From: Intoshia linei
Taxonomy: Eukaryota > Animalia > Orthonectida
Length of the DNA stretch: 64,000 bases
Direction of reading: 5' to 3'
Assembly: GCA_001642005.1 (NCBI GenBank)
Contig: LWCA01000022.1
Location: forward strand, 14,599-78,598
Shown here: positions 8,884 to 60,612 of the stretch, piece after piece
How the letters are laid out: each line of letters opens with the position of its first letter
How positions within the stretch are numbered: position 1 is the first letter of the stretch
The notes under the pieces: model-generated
Seen by the model: the letters and a program-made list of their open reading frames with translations, nothing else
The model's database searches: none
What the model was told of the DNA's origin: nothing
Made by a program: the position numbers and the translations under genes

Positions 8884-9071
8884 ATCGCTTCTCGAGCTTT
8901 TGGCTCGGATCAAAAAGTGTAGTATCTGTTCTTACAAGCGTAATTTCTTGTACGCTACCCACGTGGTAGCACAGAAGTTATCTCTATTTTTAGCATTTGG
9001 TGATTGTTTCTTGCTTGCAAGGTCTTCACCACGGGTTGTTATGTCCTTGCACTAATGACGTGTACAGCCCA
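8884..9071 (+). ncRNA. U2: U2 spliceosomal snRNA (variant sequence, intact structure)
   Basis: 5' ATCGCTTCTCG; GTGTAGTATCTGTTCTTA with branch-recognition GTAGTA at 8919-8924; stem IIa TACAAG/CTTGTA; stem IIb GCTACC/GGTAGC; IIc pairing TAATTTCT/AGAAGTTA; Sm site ATTTTTAG 8986-8993; stem III TGGTGA/TCACCA; stem IV GGGTTGT/ACAGCCC with TTGCAC loop; about 188 nt. Confidence 0.96.
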
Positions 9072-9939
9072 ATAATTAATTAAAATAGATTTTGTAAAGT
9101 AAAATATGAATGCTATATTTTTCAATTTAATGGTTTTCTAACTAACTGTTGTTTTTAATTTTACATAAGTATACACTCTTTTTAATACAATACATATTAT
9201 TATTAAAAAATTTATGTTTTCATATTAGAAGCGTAATTTTTCAATTAAAAATCAAATTGTTTTATATATGCAAAATGAGATAAAAAATTTTAATCATGCT
9301 TTTAGGTGCCGCAATTTTTTGAAATTTTATAAAGGTTCTGCGCCATAAAAAAAGTTGAGAAACACTGGATTAACCCTTTTAAATGACTGAATAAAAATTT
9401 AAAATTTGCTAAATTTTGACTAAAAATTGCTTTTTCTTATGAAATTTTCTTTTTTGATAACATTGACTTTTTCAATAAAATATTTAATGTATCCATTTGA
9501 AAATTTCTCAGTTAGTTAATTCAAATGATATACGTATTAATACGTATTAAACGATAAACGATAATTCAATAAATACGAATGGAATTCAATATTTTAATAT
9601 TTCTGGGTCGTTTTAATGTTAAAAATTAATATTATTTAAATTTATCTAAATTTATAAAAAATTTAAAAAAATTTCGAATATTAAAATGATTGTCATTATT
9701 TAAAAGTTTACAAAAATTGTCCGAAATATTTTCATATTTTTTTAAATCAAACGGAATAATAACAATCATTGAACCTGTAGTGAAAAATCATTTTCAACAT
9801 TAATTAATTTTATTAAATTAACTATTATAGTTGAAATATGTTTTTTTTTAATATTATATAATTTTTTTAAAAATGACGAAGTTTGTTTGTGAACTGTGTC
9901 AAAAATAAAGATTTTTTATTAATATTAGTGTCACAGGAT

Positions 9940-10919
9940 CTGTTATATCTTGAAATTATAATAAATGCACTAGTCTATCGGATATAATAGATATGCACGT
10001 TTTTTAAAACATTGGTTTTTTTATTCAATTTTTGGTTCATAAATTGGTACAGTTTTTAAAAAGGTATCCTTTTAATTCAAAATGTTGATTAAATCCCCGA
10101 AATAATTAATCAAAATTATTATCGCATAAAGTTTGCCGTTAATTAAGGACGAATTAAACTTGATTACGTATATTATGACGAAATAAACTACATTGTTCAG
10201 ATATTTCTTAAAATATTCATTAAATCACCAAATTGTTTAATAATGAATGTGCCAAAAATCCGACATTTAACGTTCAATATTTACAAGTCTGACTGTATTT
10301 ATAGCATTGTCTGCAACGCAGCAAAGAACTTTAGCCCCACAATTCTGTAGTTCCAGTATTATTCTATTCAAATGCTCATACAATTTGTCACCACTCTGTT
10401 CTTCCATTTCGACGCTACTCCAATAAAATACTTTTTTGTTGGTATATAACATGACAAATGTCTGACTGAGTTGACTGGGTTATTCCACAAATCAAGCATT
10501 ATGGATATTAGCTCAGATTTAAAGTATGGTTGCATATTTAATTTAATTTTTAAGAATAAAGTTTTAATTCTTTTAGATATTATAAATCTTGATTTGCAAT
10601 GCACACAATAAGCTCACTGAAAAATAGGGTCTTCTACAATGTTGAACGGCAAAACGTGATTGCAACAACACGTTGCAATTAAGTAATAGACTTGTCTGTC
10701 TATATAAGGCAAACTTGGAAATTTTTCATCTTTCTTAATTGCTAAAATACTCGTTATTTTTGGCGTGCCAGAAACATTGTCCAAGTCACCATGCATTTTT
10801 AAATGATTCCTCAATGACGCCATGTGTGAATGAGAATTTATGTATTAGATTCTTTTTGAGCATACTAAACATTGCATGTAATTAACTTCGTCTTTTTTAA
10901 AGTGTTTTAGTGAATTCAT
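9940..10919 (-). pseudogene. Degraded BED zinc-finger hAT transposase
   Basis: Joined broken frames give BED-like CLVC...LRNHLKMH, LPFNIVEDPIF, first catalytic D in ISIMLDLW and second in CCVADNA. There are several stops and frameshifts. The 3' limit is approximate. Confidence 0.75.
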
Positions 10920-11291
10920 GCTGTTGAACGATAATATAAAATGATAATAAGAGGTTTTATTCTAAATCAATTCAAATTGTGATTATACATCAAAATTTTA
11001 TAGTATTTAAAAAATTGATTAATTTTGCTGGTAATAAAACAGCTATGTTGGTATCATACTTGGTGATAAATATTGAATTGAAATAATTTATGTTAAAATA
11101 TATACTATAATTACGTAAAAATAAATAAGTTATATAAATAACAAAATTTGTAATATAAAATTTAGATTCATAACTTTATTTAGTATGTTAAAAGTACGTT
11201 ATTAGCACTGTGCCAATAACGTATTTTTTATAAAATAAACAACAAACGTACTTATGGTCGCACTATTTAAATAAAAATATCCCGACTAATT

Positions 11292-11359
11292 TTAACATCA
11301 GATACAGGGTTTCTAATCAGACGTCATATGTCCCTACCTGTGGTATCATCATTTGTTAA
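11292..11359 (-). ncRNA. Box C/D snoRNA, SNORD74/snR64-like (copy 2)
   Basis: Box C ATGATGA 11352-11346; guide AGGTAGGGACA complementary to LSU rRNA UGUCCCUACCU; D' ATGA; C'-like TGATTA; box D CTGA 11301-11298; terminal stem TTAACA/TGTTAA. Confidence 0.88.
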
Positions 11360-11366
11360 TTAAAAT

Positions 11367-11427
11367 AATCAGAAATTAGTTTTTATCATAATATTTCAAT
11401 GAGATTCCCAATAATTTCATCATAAAA
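11367..11427 (-). ncRNA. Box C/D snoRNA, SNORD79-like
   Basis: Box C ATGATGA 11423-11417; guide TGGGAATCTC (11410-11401) complementary to LSU rRNA GAGAUUCCCA; D' TTGA; C' ATGATAA; box D CTGA 11372-11369. Confidence 0.86.
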
Positions 11428-11456
11428 AAGTACGTAAAACTCATCGAAAGTATTAA

Positions 11457-11529
11457 TTTTGAAATCAGATACAGGGTTTCTAATCAGACGTCATATGTCC
11501 CTACCTGTGGTATCATCATTTAATCAAAA
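11457..11529 (-). ncRNA. Box C/D snoRNA, SNORD74/snR64-like (copy 1)
   Basis: 11464-11521 is identical over 58 bp to 11297-11354. Box C 11519-11513, box D 11468-11465. It has a different flanking stem, TTTTGA/TCAAAA. Confidence 0.88.
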
Positions 11530-11531
11530 CT

Positions 11532-11615
11532 AGTGTTAGTTTCAGTAATATTTCGATATCATTTGTGTAAACACATAATAAGTAGCAAATATTTCAAAAC
11601 ATCATCAATAACACT
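11532..11615 (-). ncRNA. Box C/D snoRNA, SNORD76-like
   Basis: Box C TTGATGA 11608-11602; guide AATATTTGCTACT complementary to LSU rRNA AGUAGCAAAUAUU; degenerate D' ATTA; internal hairpin TGTGT/ACACA; C'-like ATGATA; box D CTGA 11545-11542; flanking stem AGTGTTA/TAACACT. Confidence 0.82.
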
Positions 11616-12241
11616 TAAAATTAAAAGTTACAATACAAAATTGAAAATTGATAAAATGAACAAACGCACACAAGAGCGATAAATAGACAATGGAACCAAA
11701 ACGAAAATAACTTTTACATAATCAATAAACATGAAATATTACATATCCAATGAAACAAAATAAAAATACACCGTAGTCATCGTATCAAAAATTAAAATAA
11801 ACTTGACAAATTTTAATTTAAATGTATACAAATTTATAAATGAATATTTAATACGAAATTTTTCAAATAAATGGATTGAAATTTAATTTATATTAACCAA
11901 TATTGACGTATAAACAAAAATTCTAGGTAATTAATAAAAAGTTAAACAATACAGCTCAAATTGTATCCTAGTAACATTTATATCTATGGAAAAAATAAAA
12001 TCTCTAAAATTGTGTATCCATTGTTTTGAGTTAAAAATTTAAGATATATTCAATACTATATTTCTCTCAGACTTGAAATAATTAGTGACATACTTTGAAT
12101 TCTATATTACGTCAAACTAGTACAATTTAGCCAATCACTTGCAAGTAAGTTGTACTCTTTGTTTATACGTTAGCGGTTAATTTAAAATGTGCATTTAGTT
12201 TGTTTTCAAATTGGTAATGTTATATTTTAGATAGTTGATTA

Positions 12242-15200
12242 ATGCAATCTGAAAAACCAAACATTTATGAAAATAGAATACCTCAGATGACGCAGAAAGG
12301 TGAAAATGCAGAGGCAAATCATCCTATCCAAGCAATTCATTCAAATGACCCAAATTCAAATTATTACCATCAAAATATGCCTAGTCAAATGAATTATCAA
12401 TATCAGCAAAATTATCCAAATGAAAGTTATTATAATGGTCAAAGTGAAACTAGAAATGTTCCACAAAATCCAAATTTTCAAAATGAATACAATTCCAGAG
12501 TTTCATCGCCGCATAGTGAAAATAAGAGTACTATTAGCCGTGAAAATTATCAGAAGTATCAGAATGCAATGGTACCGAGATTTCAGGGACAAAAGCCGTT
12601 TGGTATGGAAGTTGACAATTATGTTAAACAGGATAATGCAAATTCAGGTCAATATATGAATTATGATGTTCGTACCGAGAATTTTAGAAGAAATGAAGAT
12701 GTCAATAAAAATATTGTTCAAACCAATAATGAACCACGGAATGAAAATCAGCAAATGAATTTTAATGTCAACCACGTGCAACAGAGGATGCCATCTGAAG
12801 GTCAGATGCAAATTCAAATGAATTCTATGAATTCTAATCAGAACCCTCAAGTACATTCTGAGCAAATGAAACGGTTTCCAAACGATCAAATACAACGAAT
12901 GAATTTGGATAATAAAATTCAATCTAGAAATATGTCAGATAATTCCATGCAACAAAAAGTTGGTGACCAGTCTCAAATGCAAATGAATATGCAAAAAATG
13001 GATGAAAATCAAATGCAGCAAAGATTAAACACCGATCACATGAAAAAAATTAATAATGATCAAATGCAACAAAGAATGGGTGCTAATCAATTTCAGAGAG
13101 TAGATTCCTATGAATCCAGTAATATGAGAATGCCTTCCGATGGCCAGTTACAGAGAATGAATCTTGAACCACAGATGCCAAGGTTGCCTAGTGCAATGCC
13201 ACTCGATGGACAAATGAAACGTTCTCTGGTTGGTGAAGCTTTATCGAATGTTGGCCAACGCACAAACCCCGAACAAGTGAACCAACCTCGAATTGGACAC
13301 GATCAAGTGCAAAGAAATATGAGTAACGAACAGGTTCCCACCAGAATGATGAATCCAGAACAGATGCAACGGATAGACCAAGAAAATCAGATGCGTATGA
13401 ATCCTTACAGACAAGGTCAAGGGCAACCGAGACTGATGACTGTCGATCAGATGCAACAAAGAATGATGCCTCCAGGTGTCCCTGTTCAAAGACTAAACGT
13501 TGAAAATCAAAATACTCCCAAAATTATGAATCCAAACGACCAATCAATTGGTCATTCCGGTCCACGAATGAATGATCAAATGCAACAGAGAATTAACGAT
13601 GGCCAAGTTCAATTACTGATGAACCCTGAGAACCAAATGCAAAATCGAATAGCTCCACCTGGACACCAAATACAATACTCGCAGCATGTTCCACCGGGAA
13701 ATCAGTACTATCCAAATCAACAAATTAAAGGTCAATATCAAATAACTGAAAACCCTGCAGATAAAATGTACGCTTATCAAAACGCAAATCAAAGAATGCC
13801 AGTAATTAATAACATGCAAAACCAAACATATCCCGCTCAAATTCGAGGTTATCCTCCTAATCAAGTTACACAACAAAATATGTATTACCCTCAAAATTAC
13901 GTGAAAATTATGCAAAACAATTATAGACCAAATGTTCACCAAAATATATACAACCAAGCACAAATGCAACCACAAATGAGAATGCCAATAAATCAATATT
14001 CACATGTTCGCAATCAGAACGTTTTCCCGGGAAATACAAATTCTCCGGTTTTTTATGATTATTCCAATCAGATGAATAAGCAATATCCTTCAAGTGTACA
14101 AAAAAATTTTTATAACCAGACTCAAATGAGATTTCAACAAAATTTCCAAAATCCAGTTTCTTCCTACAATGCGTATCCGGCCAGGCCTGAAGAAGTTAAT
14201 CGACCTAGCTTAATGAATTATGAAAAAAACAATGCTGATAATTCCGTTAATCTAACCCATGAAAATGTTTATAATATTCAGAGGCAACCTTTAACGCAAG
14301 GTGTGCGACCCGACAGCTCTCAAGTGAAAAAAATTTCAGCCCAATTACAGGCTTACAGAGCTTTGTCTAGAAATACCGTAATTCCAGAACATGTTAAACG
14401 TAATGCTATTACCCATGAAGAATCGATTGTAGAGGATGTGAAATATAATAATGAAACTGTAATTGAAAAAAAAGTAATCATGGATCCGAAAAAGTTGGGA
14501 ATCGATCCGTTGGAAATTTTAAAAGAACGTGATGTAAGAATAAACAATAGAATTTCATTGAGAATTAAAGAAATTAATGCCATCTTACCTGAAATTGAAA
14601 CTATAGATTTGAGGACAAAATTAATGATTGAATTGAGAAGTTTGCGTTTAATTACATTCCAAAAACACCTAAGAAGTGATATTGTTGGGAAACTGCGTCG
14701 GGATACCACAATGGAAACTGCTTTAAACCCAAAATCATATCGTCGAATAAAAAGACAAACTCTTAGAGAAGCTAGAATCACAGAAAAACTAGAACTTTTA
14801 CAGGAAATCGAAGTCAATAAAAAACGTAAACAATTACAGCATGAATTTATTAATAGTATTTTGACATATTACAAAGATTTCAAGGATACGCATAGACTTC
14901 GACATAATAAAATGGTCAAATTGAATAAAGCTTTAATGTTATATTTTGCAAATAATGAACGCGAACAAAAACGAGAACGGGAAAGAATGGAAAAAGAACG
15001 AATGAAACGATTAATGGAGGAAGATGAAGATGGGTACAGAAAATTGATTGATCAACAAAAAGACAAACGGTTGGCTTATTTATTACGACAAACTGATGAT
15101 TACATTGTAAATCTGACAAAATTGGTTGCTCAACATAAATTGAATACAATTAAAGAAAATAAACCAAAAAAAAGCGCAAATGGTATCCCTGATATTGACG

Positions 15201-18182
15201 AATCTAGTCAAAATGGAAATAACGATCCGCACATTAAAGTCATAGATCAAAATACCGGTACAATTTTGGAAGGTGAATCGGCTCCACGGTCGAGTCAATT
15301 GGAATCTTGGCTGGACGACCACAAGTCGTATCAAGTCGCACCGAGAGATGACGATTTAAGTGAAGAAGAGCGTAATTTAATGGGGATTATCGATTCTACC
15401 AACAATAAAAATGAAGTCGAAGATGATAATACTATTAAAAAAGCTTACCGAGAAGATGACGATTTTGTGTCTACGAATCAAAATTATTTCAAAATTGCTC
15501 ATTCAATTTTAGAAAAGGTAGACGTACAACCCAAAATTTTGGTTGGCGGTACTTTAAAACTTTACCAAGTCAGTGGTTTGGAATGGCTGGTCAGTCTTTA
15601 CAATAATAAATTAAACGGCATTTTGGCTGATGAAATGGGCCTCGGAAAAACTATTCAAACTATTGCTTTGATATCATATTTAATTGAAATCAAATCTAAT
15701 TACGGGCCTTATTTAATTATTGTACCTCTTTCTACATTGTCTAACTGGGACTTTGAATTACAAAAATGGGCTCCAAGTGTTCAAAGAATTATATACAAGG
15801 GTTCTCCTGCCGCTAGACGTGCTTTGCAGGCTACTTTGAGAAGTAGTCGATTTAATGTCTTGTTAACTACTTATGATTACGTTATGCGAGATAGAGCAGT
15901 TTTAGCAAAATATAAATGGAAATATATGATTATTGATGAGGGGCACAGAATGAAAAACCATCATTGCAAGTTGACGCAGGTTTTAAACACGTATTACACT
16001 GCTGTTAATAGGCTTTTACTCACTGGAACTCCTCTTCAAAACAATTTACCTGAACTTTGGGCTCTGTTGACCTTTTTATTGCCATCAATTTTCAAATCAT
16101 GTGCAACTTTTGAACAATGGTTCAACGCGCCATTTGCATCAACATTTGAAAAAGTCGAATTGAACCAAGAAGAAACTTTGTTGATTATTCGAAGATTACA
16201 TAAAGTTCTCAGACCATTTTTATTGAGACGATTAAAAAAGGAAGTCGAATCCCAGTTACCGGAAAAGGTCGAATATGTCGTCAAATGCGACATGTCAGGG
16301 ATTCAAAAGGTAATTTACCGTCATATGCAAAAACGGGGCATTATGTTGACTGATGACACTGATAAATCAAAGAAAGGTATTAACGGATCACGAGCTTTAA
16401 TGAATACTATTATGCAACTTCGAAAAATTTGTAATCATCCTTTTTTGTACCAACATATTGAAGAAGCGCTTACTAAATTTGCAAATATTCCGATGGGGGT
16501 AGAAAGTCCTCTAATATTTCGTTCTGCCGGCAAGTTTGAATTGATGGATCGAATTCTACCTAAATTGAAAGCTACAAATCACAAAGTTTTGCTATTTTGT
16601 CAAATGACGAATTTGATGACTATTCTAGAAGACTATTTTTTGTATAAAGGTTACTCATATCTCAGACTCGATGGATCTACAAAAGCGGATGACCGTGGCG
16701 AATTATTAACCCAATTCAATAGCCCAGATTCAGATTATTTTATTTTCCTTTTGTCTACTCGTGCTGGAGGTCTCGGGTTAAATTTACAAACTGCTGATAC
16801 TGTTATAATATTTGATTCCGATTGGAACCCACACCAAGATTTACAAGCTCAAGACAGAGCGCATAGAATTGGTCAGACGAATGAAGTTAGAGTTTTACGA
16901 TTGATGACAATAAACTCGGTCGAAGAAAAAATTTTGGCTGCCGCTCGGTTCAAGTTAAATTTGGACGAAAAGGTTATTCAGGCAGGTATGTTTGATCAAA
17001 AATCAACAAATGCTGAAAGAAAACAATTTTTAACACAAATTCTTACAGCGGATGAATTGGACGGAGAAGAAGAATGTGAAGTACCAGACGATGAAACTAT
17101 TAATCAGATGCTTTCTCGGACAGAAGAAGAATTTGAAATTTGTCAAAAAATTGATGATCACCGCATAATGTTGGAAAAACAGGAGGGGCAATATACAAGC
17201 AGGTTGGTTGAAATTAGTGAAATTCCGAGTTGGTTGCTCAAAAACGACGAAGAGGTTGAAAAAATGACTTTGGATGATCAAAAGGAACGTCTGTTTGCTC
17301 GAGGTGCTAGAATTCATAAACGTGTTGATTATACTGATAATATTACTGAAAAGCAATGGCTAAATGCTGTAGAAGAAGGAAATTTAGATGAAGTCAAACA
17401 CGATATAAAAGACAAGGTTAAAAAGCGTGGAAGGCGTTCTAATAATGTTTCGTATATGGAAAATTCACCTGAAGATAAAAGAAGGAGAATTCGAAAAAAT
17501 TATTTAAAAACCAAGGATTTATCTTCTCAACAAAAACTCATGAAAAATCTTATTCACGTTATTTTGAATTATGTTGACAGGTATTTTTATTTTTATCTCA
17601 TATAACTTAAATTTAGTGATGGTCGAGTTCTAAGTGAACCATTCATGGTTATCCCCTCTAAAAAAGATTTACCCGATTACTACGATATTGTTGAAAATCC
17701 AATAGACTTTAAAACTATAAAGGTAGCGTCAAAATTTTGTGATTTTAATAAAAAAATTTAGAAACGAATACACGAAGGATGTTACAAATCCATCAACGAC
17801 ATTGAAAGTGATATAATGCTACTTTGTCAAAACGCCCAAACCTTCAATATGGAAGGATCCTTGGTAATTTTTTATTTAATTATGTTTTAAAATTTATTTA
17901 GATTTACGAAGATTCAATAATTCTTCAAACTGTTTTTATGAACGCTAGAGAAAGGTTGGACGGGTCCAACTTGTGCTATGAGAGTACTGCTAGCAATAAA
18001 TCTGATGGTAACTACTCGGGTAATTTTCAATTGTCGCCACTTTTAAACTCAATTTAGATGCATCACGAAAACGCAGAAAAATAAATACAAAGTCCACAAA
18101 GGTTTAGTTTTTTTATAGTGAAACTAATTTCTTTTAGAAAAGAGGACGAAAACCACGAAAAATAGACCTCTCTGATGATTAA
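12242..18182 (+). CDS. SMARCA4: SWI/SNF chromatin-remodelling ATPase brahma / SMARCA2/4
   Basis: QLQ ([11 protein letters not shown]), HSA, BRK, SNF2 ATPase ([27 protein letters not shown]), SnAC and bromodomain ([20 protein letters not shown]). Exons 12242-17580, 17617-17722, 17762-17863, 17902-18019, 18058-18101, 18138-18182. Confidence 0.97.
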
Positions 18183-59932: not shown

Positions 59933-60612
59933 TCAATCTTCAGTTAAATCATCGTTGAAATACAAATGAATGCTTGGTATATATAAGTCATCATCAATAG
60001 ATAATTTATAAAATATTTCATCTTCATCTTTCACACCATTTGCTTCTAGAGTTTTATTCATGTCCAAATCAACCAAATTGTATTTCCACGTATAAGATTT
60101 AGCATGAGAATTATAAACAAGGTACCGCTGTAAAATATCATACATAGTTTCTTCGGAACAAACCTCAATAATGTGTTTCTGGCTGGTAAGTGTATTTACA
60201 ATAACAATTTGTCTAGTTTTTTTTGTAAGAATCCCAATGGCAAATGACAAATCTAACCACCAGGGACGTTTAAAATTGTTATCCCATGAACTGTCTGGGT
60301 ATGGAGGTTCGACGTGCATTACACGTCCATTTTGACAATAATGCAAATTTAATTCCGTTTTTGGGTCAATAAATGTTTTTAAAGATTTTGTTTCAGGATC
60401 AAACCAATGCGAAATATCTGTACCTGCAGCCATTATTAATAGTTTTGTCAAAATATTGTCACTGTTGATTTTACAAAATTCAGTCAAATTGTATACTTTA
60501 CCCAAAAAACTAAGCCACAAATCTTTAGCTTCATTATGCTAATAAAAATTTCAATAAATACAGTATTGCAACTAACCTGAGATACTTCATGTGGTGTGTA
60601 ATATTTGTTCAT
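59933..60612 (-). CDS. CYB5D1: Cytochrome b5 domain-containing protein 1 (axonemal)
   Basis: Exon 1 MNKYYTPHEVSQ (60612-60577), a short intron, then HNEAKDLWLSFLGKVYNLT, AGTDISHWFD, EVCSEETM..IL.RYL.YNSHAKSYTWKY and LYFNDDLTE. Confidence 0.95.

Follow-up and report, generated by a model that had tools for sequence, protein, structure and literature searches.

Four box C/D snoRNA-like units with guides for three LSU rRNA sites form a tight, probably polycistronic cluster in Intoshia linei

In this study we analyzed a 64-kb window of Intoshia linei DNA and found that 324 bp of its minus strand (11292-11615) harbor four box C/D units, in which the UGAUGA and CUGA boxes are exact. Judged by their sequence, these units appear to be genuine, previously unannotated snoRNA genes of known families, with guides of the U24/U76, U74, and U79 types. 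The best explanation for the locus as a whole is probably that of a genuine four-unit C/D cluster which is expressed as one precursor and serves three targets in the LSU rRNA, and we hold this view with good confidence. The four guide RNA genes would be added to a genome whose non-coding RNAs have not been described, and a full-text literature search returned only two papers in which Intoshia and snoRNA are both mentioned, the one listed being concerned with an unrelated topic.

Architecture of the cluster

The coordinates of the units and their elements are listed in Table 1. In all four units box C is located near the 5′ end and box D near the 3′ end, as in box C/D snoRNAs in general. The distance from box C to box D spans 66 nt in unit 1 and 54 nt in each of units 2, 3, and 4, and the spacers between a D box and the next (A)UGAUGA comprise 22, 41, and 16 nt. 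The same three spacer lengths had been given in a first-pass annotation of this DNA, together with the absence of both AG and GT from the 16-nt spacer, and a recount gave the same result. The C boxes and terminal CUGA boxes that had been assigned to the four units were also found, but the D′ boxes do not have the sequence CUGA; those of units 2 to 4 read AUGA or UUGA, and unit 1 has a degenerate one.

In the window, the pattern UGAUGA-N44-60-CUGA is matched five times, compared to 1.33 ± 1.15 times in shuffled sequences, and four of the five matches are the units of the cluster, all on one strand and within 324 bp. When the complete assembly (41.6 Mb, 3520 contigs) was searched, the cluster stretch proved to be single-copy.

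The sequences flanking units 1, 2, and 4 can form terminal stems of 7, 9, and 6 to 7 bp, respectively, whereas no such stem was found at the flanks of unit 3. As chance alone produces stems of at least 6 bp in 23% of flank pairs drawn at random from this AT-rich DNA, the terminal stems are weak evidence when taken alone. Their positions are nevertheless informative regarding the spacing of the units: the stems of units 1 and 2 make contact at position 11532, the former with its 3′ half and the latter with its 5′ half, and the 16-nt spacer contains the 5′ half of the stem of unit 4, so that almost no linker is left between the units. When the cluster was folded as a single RNA, its folding energy was not unusual (z = −0.61).

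Units 2 and 4 are identical in 58 of 58 nucleotides (11521-11464 and 11354-11297), and this identity extends from 3 bases before box C to 1 base after box D. The flanks of the two units are unrelated, yet each flank pair still makes its own stem.

Table 1. Predicted elements of the snoRNA cluster, neighboring features in the window, and further C/D tandems of the assembly
Feature	Position	Strand	Remarks
Unit 1, U24/U76-type box C/D snoRNA	11532..11615	minus	Boxes, LSU complement, stem, SNORD24 match
Unit 1, C box UGAUGA	11607-11602	minus	
Unit 1, D′ guide	11593-11581	minus	
Unit 1, D′ box	around 11579-11576	minus	Degenerate
Unit 1, C′-like UGAUAU	around 11559-11554	minus	
Unit 1, D box CUGA	11545-11542	minus	
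Unit 1, terminal stem	11615-11609 with 11538-11532	minus	7 bp
Unit 2, U74-type box C/D snoRNA	11454..11532	minus	SNORD74 match, boxes, stem
Unit 2, C box UGAUGA	11518-11513	minus	
Unit 2, guide	11505-11495	minus	
Unit 2, D′ box AUGA	11494-11491	minus	
Unit 2, C′ box UGAUUA	11486-11481	minus	
Unit 2, orphan D guide	11480-11469	minus	12 nt
Unit 2, D box CUGA	11468-11465	minus	
Unit 2, terminal stem	11532-11524 with 11462-11454	minus	9 bp
Unit 3, U79-type box C/D snoRNA	11369..11423	minus	Rfam matches, boxes
Unit 3, C box UGAUGA	11422-11417	minus	
Unit 3, guide	11410-11401	minus	
Unit 3, D′ box UUGA	11399-11396	minus	
Unit 3, C′ box UGAUAA	11388-11383	minus	
Unit 3, D box CUGA	11372-11369	minus	
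Unit 4, second U74-type copy	11292..11359	minus	Identity to unit 2, stem, Rfam match
Unit 4, C box UGAUGA	11351-11346	minus	
Unit 4, guide	11338-11328	minus	
Unit 4, D box CUGA	11301-11298	minus	
Unit 4, terminal stem	11359-11354 with 11297-11292	minus	6-7 bp
Spacer between cluster and brahma	11616..12241	minus	Precursor start expected here
brahma/SMARCA ORF	12242-17605	plus	Intronless, 1787 aa; SNF2, HSA, BRK, and SnAC domains
C/D tandem, contig C394	C394:6553-6990 (L008)		Five C/D units; after the first unit, two snR60/U80-type and two U24-type units alternate
C/D tandem, contig C1991			Three or more units, together with repeat copies that are partly degenerate; 14-nt complement to LSU
Two-unit cassette, contigs C2527 and C2713	L032 1260-1570 (C2527); L035 1450-1570 (C2713)		Spacer of about 10 nt; second unit of snR61/U38 type
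U14-like array, contig C1576	C1576:1-620 (L018)		Some C boxes mutated; 3′ splice site 118 nt past the end of the array

The guides of the four units correspond to three known LSU methylation sites

Directly after its box C, unit 1 carries a guide that forms a perfect 13-nt complement to the LSU rRNA of Intoshia itself (contig C1, L001 2634-2646), and four further pairs are possible past a one-base bulge. The LSU complementarity proposed in the first-pass annotation therefore holds against the rRNA of the same genome. The site corresponds to human Am2350, which is guided by U76, and to Arabidopsis Am1451, which is guided by U24 (PMC3511168, Hoeppner and Poole); in yeast it lies at about A1447-A1449, and the guide is again U24 (PMC3511168). 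Methylation of this site is known from human, yeast, and Arabidopsis (PMC3511168). Unit 1 resembles SNORD24 and SNORD76 in having a D′ guide complementary to the AGUAGCAAAUAUU segment of the LSU rRNA and differs from them in lacking a recognizable D′ box. As the D′ box is degenerate (AUUA or UAUU), the modified nucleotide may be either the A or the neighboring G.

In an Rfam search with 106 nt covering unit 1 (E values up to 10), SNORD24 was the only related match, with an alignment that crosses the guide and a score of 19.7 bits compared to a gathering score of 41. No SNORD76 match was listed in this search, and the SNORD76 model is perhaps absent from the library. Unit 1 had previously been taken for U76. 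This assignment is supported with respect to the type of target site, but not with respect to U76 in particular, since U24 serves the site in yeast and plants and SNORD24 is the only related Rfam match; by its sequence, unit 1 appears to be as much U24-like as U76-like. The second function of U24, directed at the equivalent of human Cm2338 (old numbering), resides on a separate snoRNA on contig C394 and not on unit 1.

The guide shared by units 2 and 4 matches the consensus of SNORD74 and of Drosophila snoMe28S-Cm2645 in 11 of 11 positions and in the same register relative to D′. Like SNORD74, snoMe28S-Cm2645, and snR64 (clan CL00069), the two units combine this 11-nt D′ guide with one unpaired U and a NUGA D′ box. 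As in the SNORD74 family, they are predicted to target the conserved LSU rRNA segment UGUCCCUACC at its first C (Cm3820 equivalent). They differ from SNORD74 in their much shorter C-to-D distance, in having AUGA as D′ box, and in being present as two identical copies in one cluster. The D′ and C′ boxes are only 4 nt apart, a geometry resembling the archaeal K-loop. The Rfam matches were SNORD74 (RF00284) for unit 2 (23.9 bits, E = 0.013, gathering score 41) and snoMe28S-Cm2645 (RF00530) for unit 4 (23.1 bits, gathering score 48).

In unit 3, the guide GGAAUCUC, the A following it, and the D′ box UUGA are identical to the consensus of Drosophila snoMe28S-Am2634. This family (RF00537) was matched with 26.3 bits (gathering score 50) and SNORD79 (RF00152) with 22.7 bits (gathering score 47). 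The target of the U79-type guide (Am3809 equivalent) is located 11 nt upstream of the U74 site. Compared to SNORD79, unit 3 is compact and has no terminal stem. The identity with the consensus guides bears out the earlier proposal that units 2 and 4 carry the SNORD74 guide and unit 3 the SNORD79 guide. The Rfam comparison suggested at that time did yield matches of the SNORD74, SNORD79, and SNORD24 types, but none reached its gathering score, as the scores of all units lay between 19.7 and 26.3 bits. At gathering level, the only Rfam match in the whole window was a U2 snRNA at 8884-9077.

An rRNA antisense element of at least 10 nt is thus present in unit 1, as judged against its own LSU rRNA, and in units 2 to 4, as judged by the Rfam consensus guide and the D′ register. 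Units 2 to 4 target a part of the 28S rRNA, in the 3′ third of the LSU, that the assembly does not contain: pattern searches for the U74/U79 target segment, for a neighboring conserved segment, and for the sarcin-ricin loop gave no match. The rDNA is fragmentary, with the LSU on contig C1 (L001) ending near model position 2254 and the SSU on contig C3331 (L005) near 1116. For the D-box guides of units 1 to 3, no convincing target was found in the available LSU, SSU, U1, and U2 sequences. An 11-nt match of the unit 1 D guide on contig C2099, located outside a weak SSU-like match, was taken as chance.

Four exact C/D pairs within 324 bp, where about one is expected per 64 kb, guides that occupy the guide slots precisely and agree with three known methylation sites, and two copies whose 100% identity is confined to the snoRNA body make it highly improbable that the units represent chance box-like motifs or decayed pseudogenes giving rise to no functional RNA. 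Such an origin would be compatible with Rfam scores below gathering, with the unclear D′ box of unit 1, and with the missing terminal stem of unit 3, and decayed copies do occur in other arrays of this genome.

Tight tandems of C/D units occur at further loci

In the genome-wide search, the tandem pattern C..D..C gave 36 matches, compared to 2 matches of the reversed control; some of the 36 represent acidic coding repeats. Several other clusters (Table 1) contain rRNA-complementary guides in the correct slots. In the five-unit tandem on contig C394, the U24-type units possess a 12-nt complement to LSU positions 2621-2632, and the first-listed unit also has a 12-nt LSU complement. The two-unit cassette is present once on contig C2713 and twice on contig C2527, where the second copy lacks one D box. 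The U14-like array on contig C1576 is located directly upstream of the last exon of an HSC70 gene, whose product ends with EEVD. In this genome, tight tandems are hence the rule for miniature C/D RNAs, and at least the tandem on contig C1576 lies inside a single intron. The cluster described here, like those at other loci, consists of several snoRNA genes on one strand that are too close to each other to have promoters or exons of their own.

Head-to-tail order on one strand, short spacers, and the lack of individual promoters or exons are likewise features of the polycistrons of plants, yeast, and trypanosomes and of intronic clusters of Drosophila and rice. The cluster differs from those polycistrons in its occurrence in a bilaterian animal, in its abutting terminal stems with spacers of 16 to 41 nt, and in having no Rnt1-type hairpins. 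A compact polycistronic arrangement is uncommon in animals and not without precedent, given the intronic clusters of Drosophila described in work cited by PMC5932544. Together with the other clusters, the locus suggests that a reduced animal genome packs C/D RNAs of near archaeal size into very tight tandems. To separate units packed in this way, a process is required for which there is little documentation in animals.

Relationship of the cluster to GAS5

In the first-pass annotation the cluster had been interpreted as an ancient linkage of the GAS5 type. According to this idea, the locus would be a GAS5 orthologue in which a U76-U74-U79 linkage of the bilaterian ancestor, originally with one snoRNA per intron, had collapsed into an abutting polycistron. 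If true, the linkage would predate the protostome/deuterostome split, splicing-independent endonucleolytic release would be needed, and the finding would bear on the dating of non-coding host genes. We consider this orthology unlikely. All three guide types do match human snoRNAs that the annotation had placed in GAS5, and no coding potential is present around the cluster, as expected for a non-coding host; U74-, U76-, and U79-type guides at a locus without coding potential indeed constitute the likeness between the two. However, SNORD74, SNORD79, and snoMe28S-Cm2645 all belong to Rfam clan CL00069, and in Arabidopsis a single snoRNA, snoR44, guides both the U74 and the U79 sites (PMC3511168). 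The adjacency of U74 and U79 is therefore explained by old tandem paralogy, and only one independent linkage is left, that of unit 1 with the U74/U79 pair. As unit 1 is equally U24-like, this remaining linkage also speaks less clearly for GAS5.

In human, U80 is a member of the GAS5 set and U24 resides in an intron of RPL7A. The presence of snR60/U80-type units beside U24-type units on another contig (C394) therefore indicates that the clusters of this genome mix the sets of human host genes, which argues further against orthology. GAS5 itself hosts about 10 snoRNAs (PMC4408788, PMC2653536). Its history has been followed within the gnathostomes only (PMC4408788), and it is described as a hotspot where snoRNAs expand and turn over, with variable content and order (PMC2653536). 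It has a TOP promoter and about 10 snoRNA families, and its snoRNAs are placed singly in introns; this organization contrasts with a cluster of three guide types on one precursor, in which exons between the units are excluded by spacers of 16 and 22 nt. A literature search for the host genes of Drosophila Me28S-A2634 and Me28S-C2645 found none, and Uhg4 was irrelevant in this respect.

Predicted precursor and its processing

The start codon of brahma, which is divergently oriented, lies 627 bp from the cluster, and no ORF of more than 40 amino acids was found between 10900 and 12241. As no coding host surrounds the cluster, the start of the precursor must be located in the brahma-proximal spacer, unless transcription proceeds antisense through brahma; we accordingly infer that the promoter is positioned within 11616..12241. 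A shared precursor is a sound inference from the 16- and 22-nt spacers, which leave no room for an exon. The earlier statement that the units do not reside in separate canonical introns is thereby upheld for at least two pairs, units 1 and 2 and units 3 and 4.

Based on these features, we propose the following sequence of events. The four units would be cotranscribed on the minus strand, from the region that they share with the divergent brahma gene, into one non-coding precursor, which may represent a single intron of a non-coding host or a transcript that is not spliced. A C/D snoRNP would form on each unit while the precursor is still nascent, the snoRNPs would be separated by an endonuclease cutting in the AU-rich linkers, and exonucleases would then trim the ends up to the bound core proteins. 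Endonucleolytic separation is needed because the stems abut and the spacers measure only 16 to 41 nt, and the cuts have to fall into the short linkers because there are no separate promoters or introns for each unit. The polycistrons of plants, yeast, and trypanosomes are likewise cut in their linkers and subsequently trimmed by exonucleases. The mature snoRNPs would guide 2′-O-methylation at three anciently modified LSU positions, namely, the equivalents of A2350 (yeast about A1447-A1449) by unit 1, of C3820/C2337 (U74/snR64) by units 2 and 4, and of A3809 (U79) by unit 3. Regarding the nuclease involved, no Rnt1-type stem-loop was found in the spacers, which are too short for it, and no match to an XendoU-type nuclease gene was obtained in the genome, the latter being a weak negative result.

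The location of the U14-like array in a single HSC70 intron of the same genome makes an intronic polycistron as conceivable as splicing-independent release. It is quite possible that a short non-coding host gene is oriented divergently to brahma, with its polyadenylation site near the AAUAAA at about 11180, that a single spliced intron of this gene contains the cluster, and that the units are released by splicing, debranching, and internal cleavage. GT and AG dinucleotides in an AT-rich context do flank the cluster, the AAUAAA follows about 115 nt downstream, and intronic clusters of snoRNA genes are documented for Drosophila (reference 17 in PMC5932544). The fit is less satisfactory at the ends of such an intron and host, as the nearest downstream AGs are situated 10 and 34 nt past the last D box, leaving scant room for a branch point, and no clear TOP or TCT start was seen.

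An independent unspliced polycistron like those of plants, yeast, or trypanosomes, under the control of a separate promoter or of a bidirectional brahma promoter, is a possibility that we entertain with some reservation. The intergenic position of the cluster, with the start codon of brahma close by on the other strand, the absence of exons or ORFs around it, and the very short AU-rich linkers typical of polycistronic arrays are in agreement with this type of transcript. It is at odds with the failure to detect a promoter element: nothing like the element found at the U1 genes (see below) was seen upstream of the cluster, although that element is too AT-rich for a reliable scan, and the upstream motif shared with other clusters was not significant. 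The missing Rnt1-type stem-loops also argue against it. If the precursor were indeed unspliced, I. linei would be a useful animal case for splicing-independent snoRNA release.

Sequence elements in the vicinity of the cluster and of other small RNA genes

Downstream of the cluster, a hairpin with a 13-bp stem and a 3-nt loop (11195-11223, minus strand) is located about 75 to 100 nt past the last D box, and the AAUAAA mentioned above lies about 20 nt beyond it. A 127-nt stretch including this hairpin had, as a whole, a folding z score of −1.87. The hairpin might mark the 3′ end of the precursor. Further downstream, a short ORF on the minus strand (10614-10919) contains a BED-zinc-finger-like CxxC...HxxxxH motif and an in-frame stop and gave no Pfam match; from its sequence it looks like a decayed fragment of a hAT-type transposase rather than a host gene. 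The fifth window match to the C...D pattern (59940-59996, minus strand) has no convincing complement in the available rRNA and is either a chance match or an orphan snoRNA.

The 11-mer TTAGTCGGGAT is present just downstream of the cluster (11279-11289, minus strand) and also about 115 nt downstream of the C394 cluster (C394:6553-6563, minus strand). The genome contains only six occurrences of it, and the remaining four do not lie close to snoRNAs. As many pairs were compared, a single shared 11-mer is not clearly beyond chance, and it was not retained as a shared downstream element. At the C394 cluster, a T7-CAG sequence resembling a good 3′ splice site was additionally noticed about 50 nt downstream.

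The upstream motif TTATCGNTCA seemed to be common to several clusters, but its EM log likelihood was 53.9, compared to a mean of 51.5 ± 1.6 for shuffled sequences, and a C-box-linked genome pattern gave 10 matches compared to 4 in the control. The motif was therefore dropped as not significant.

The U1 genes (L040-L043) have a common element, ATAAATTATG, at about −70 (60 to 75 nt upstream) and a TTTAA-like sequence at about −25. We regard ATAAATTATG as a candidate for the proximal sequence element of snRNA genes. The U2 genes show a looser A/AT-rich element at a similar distance.
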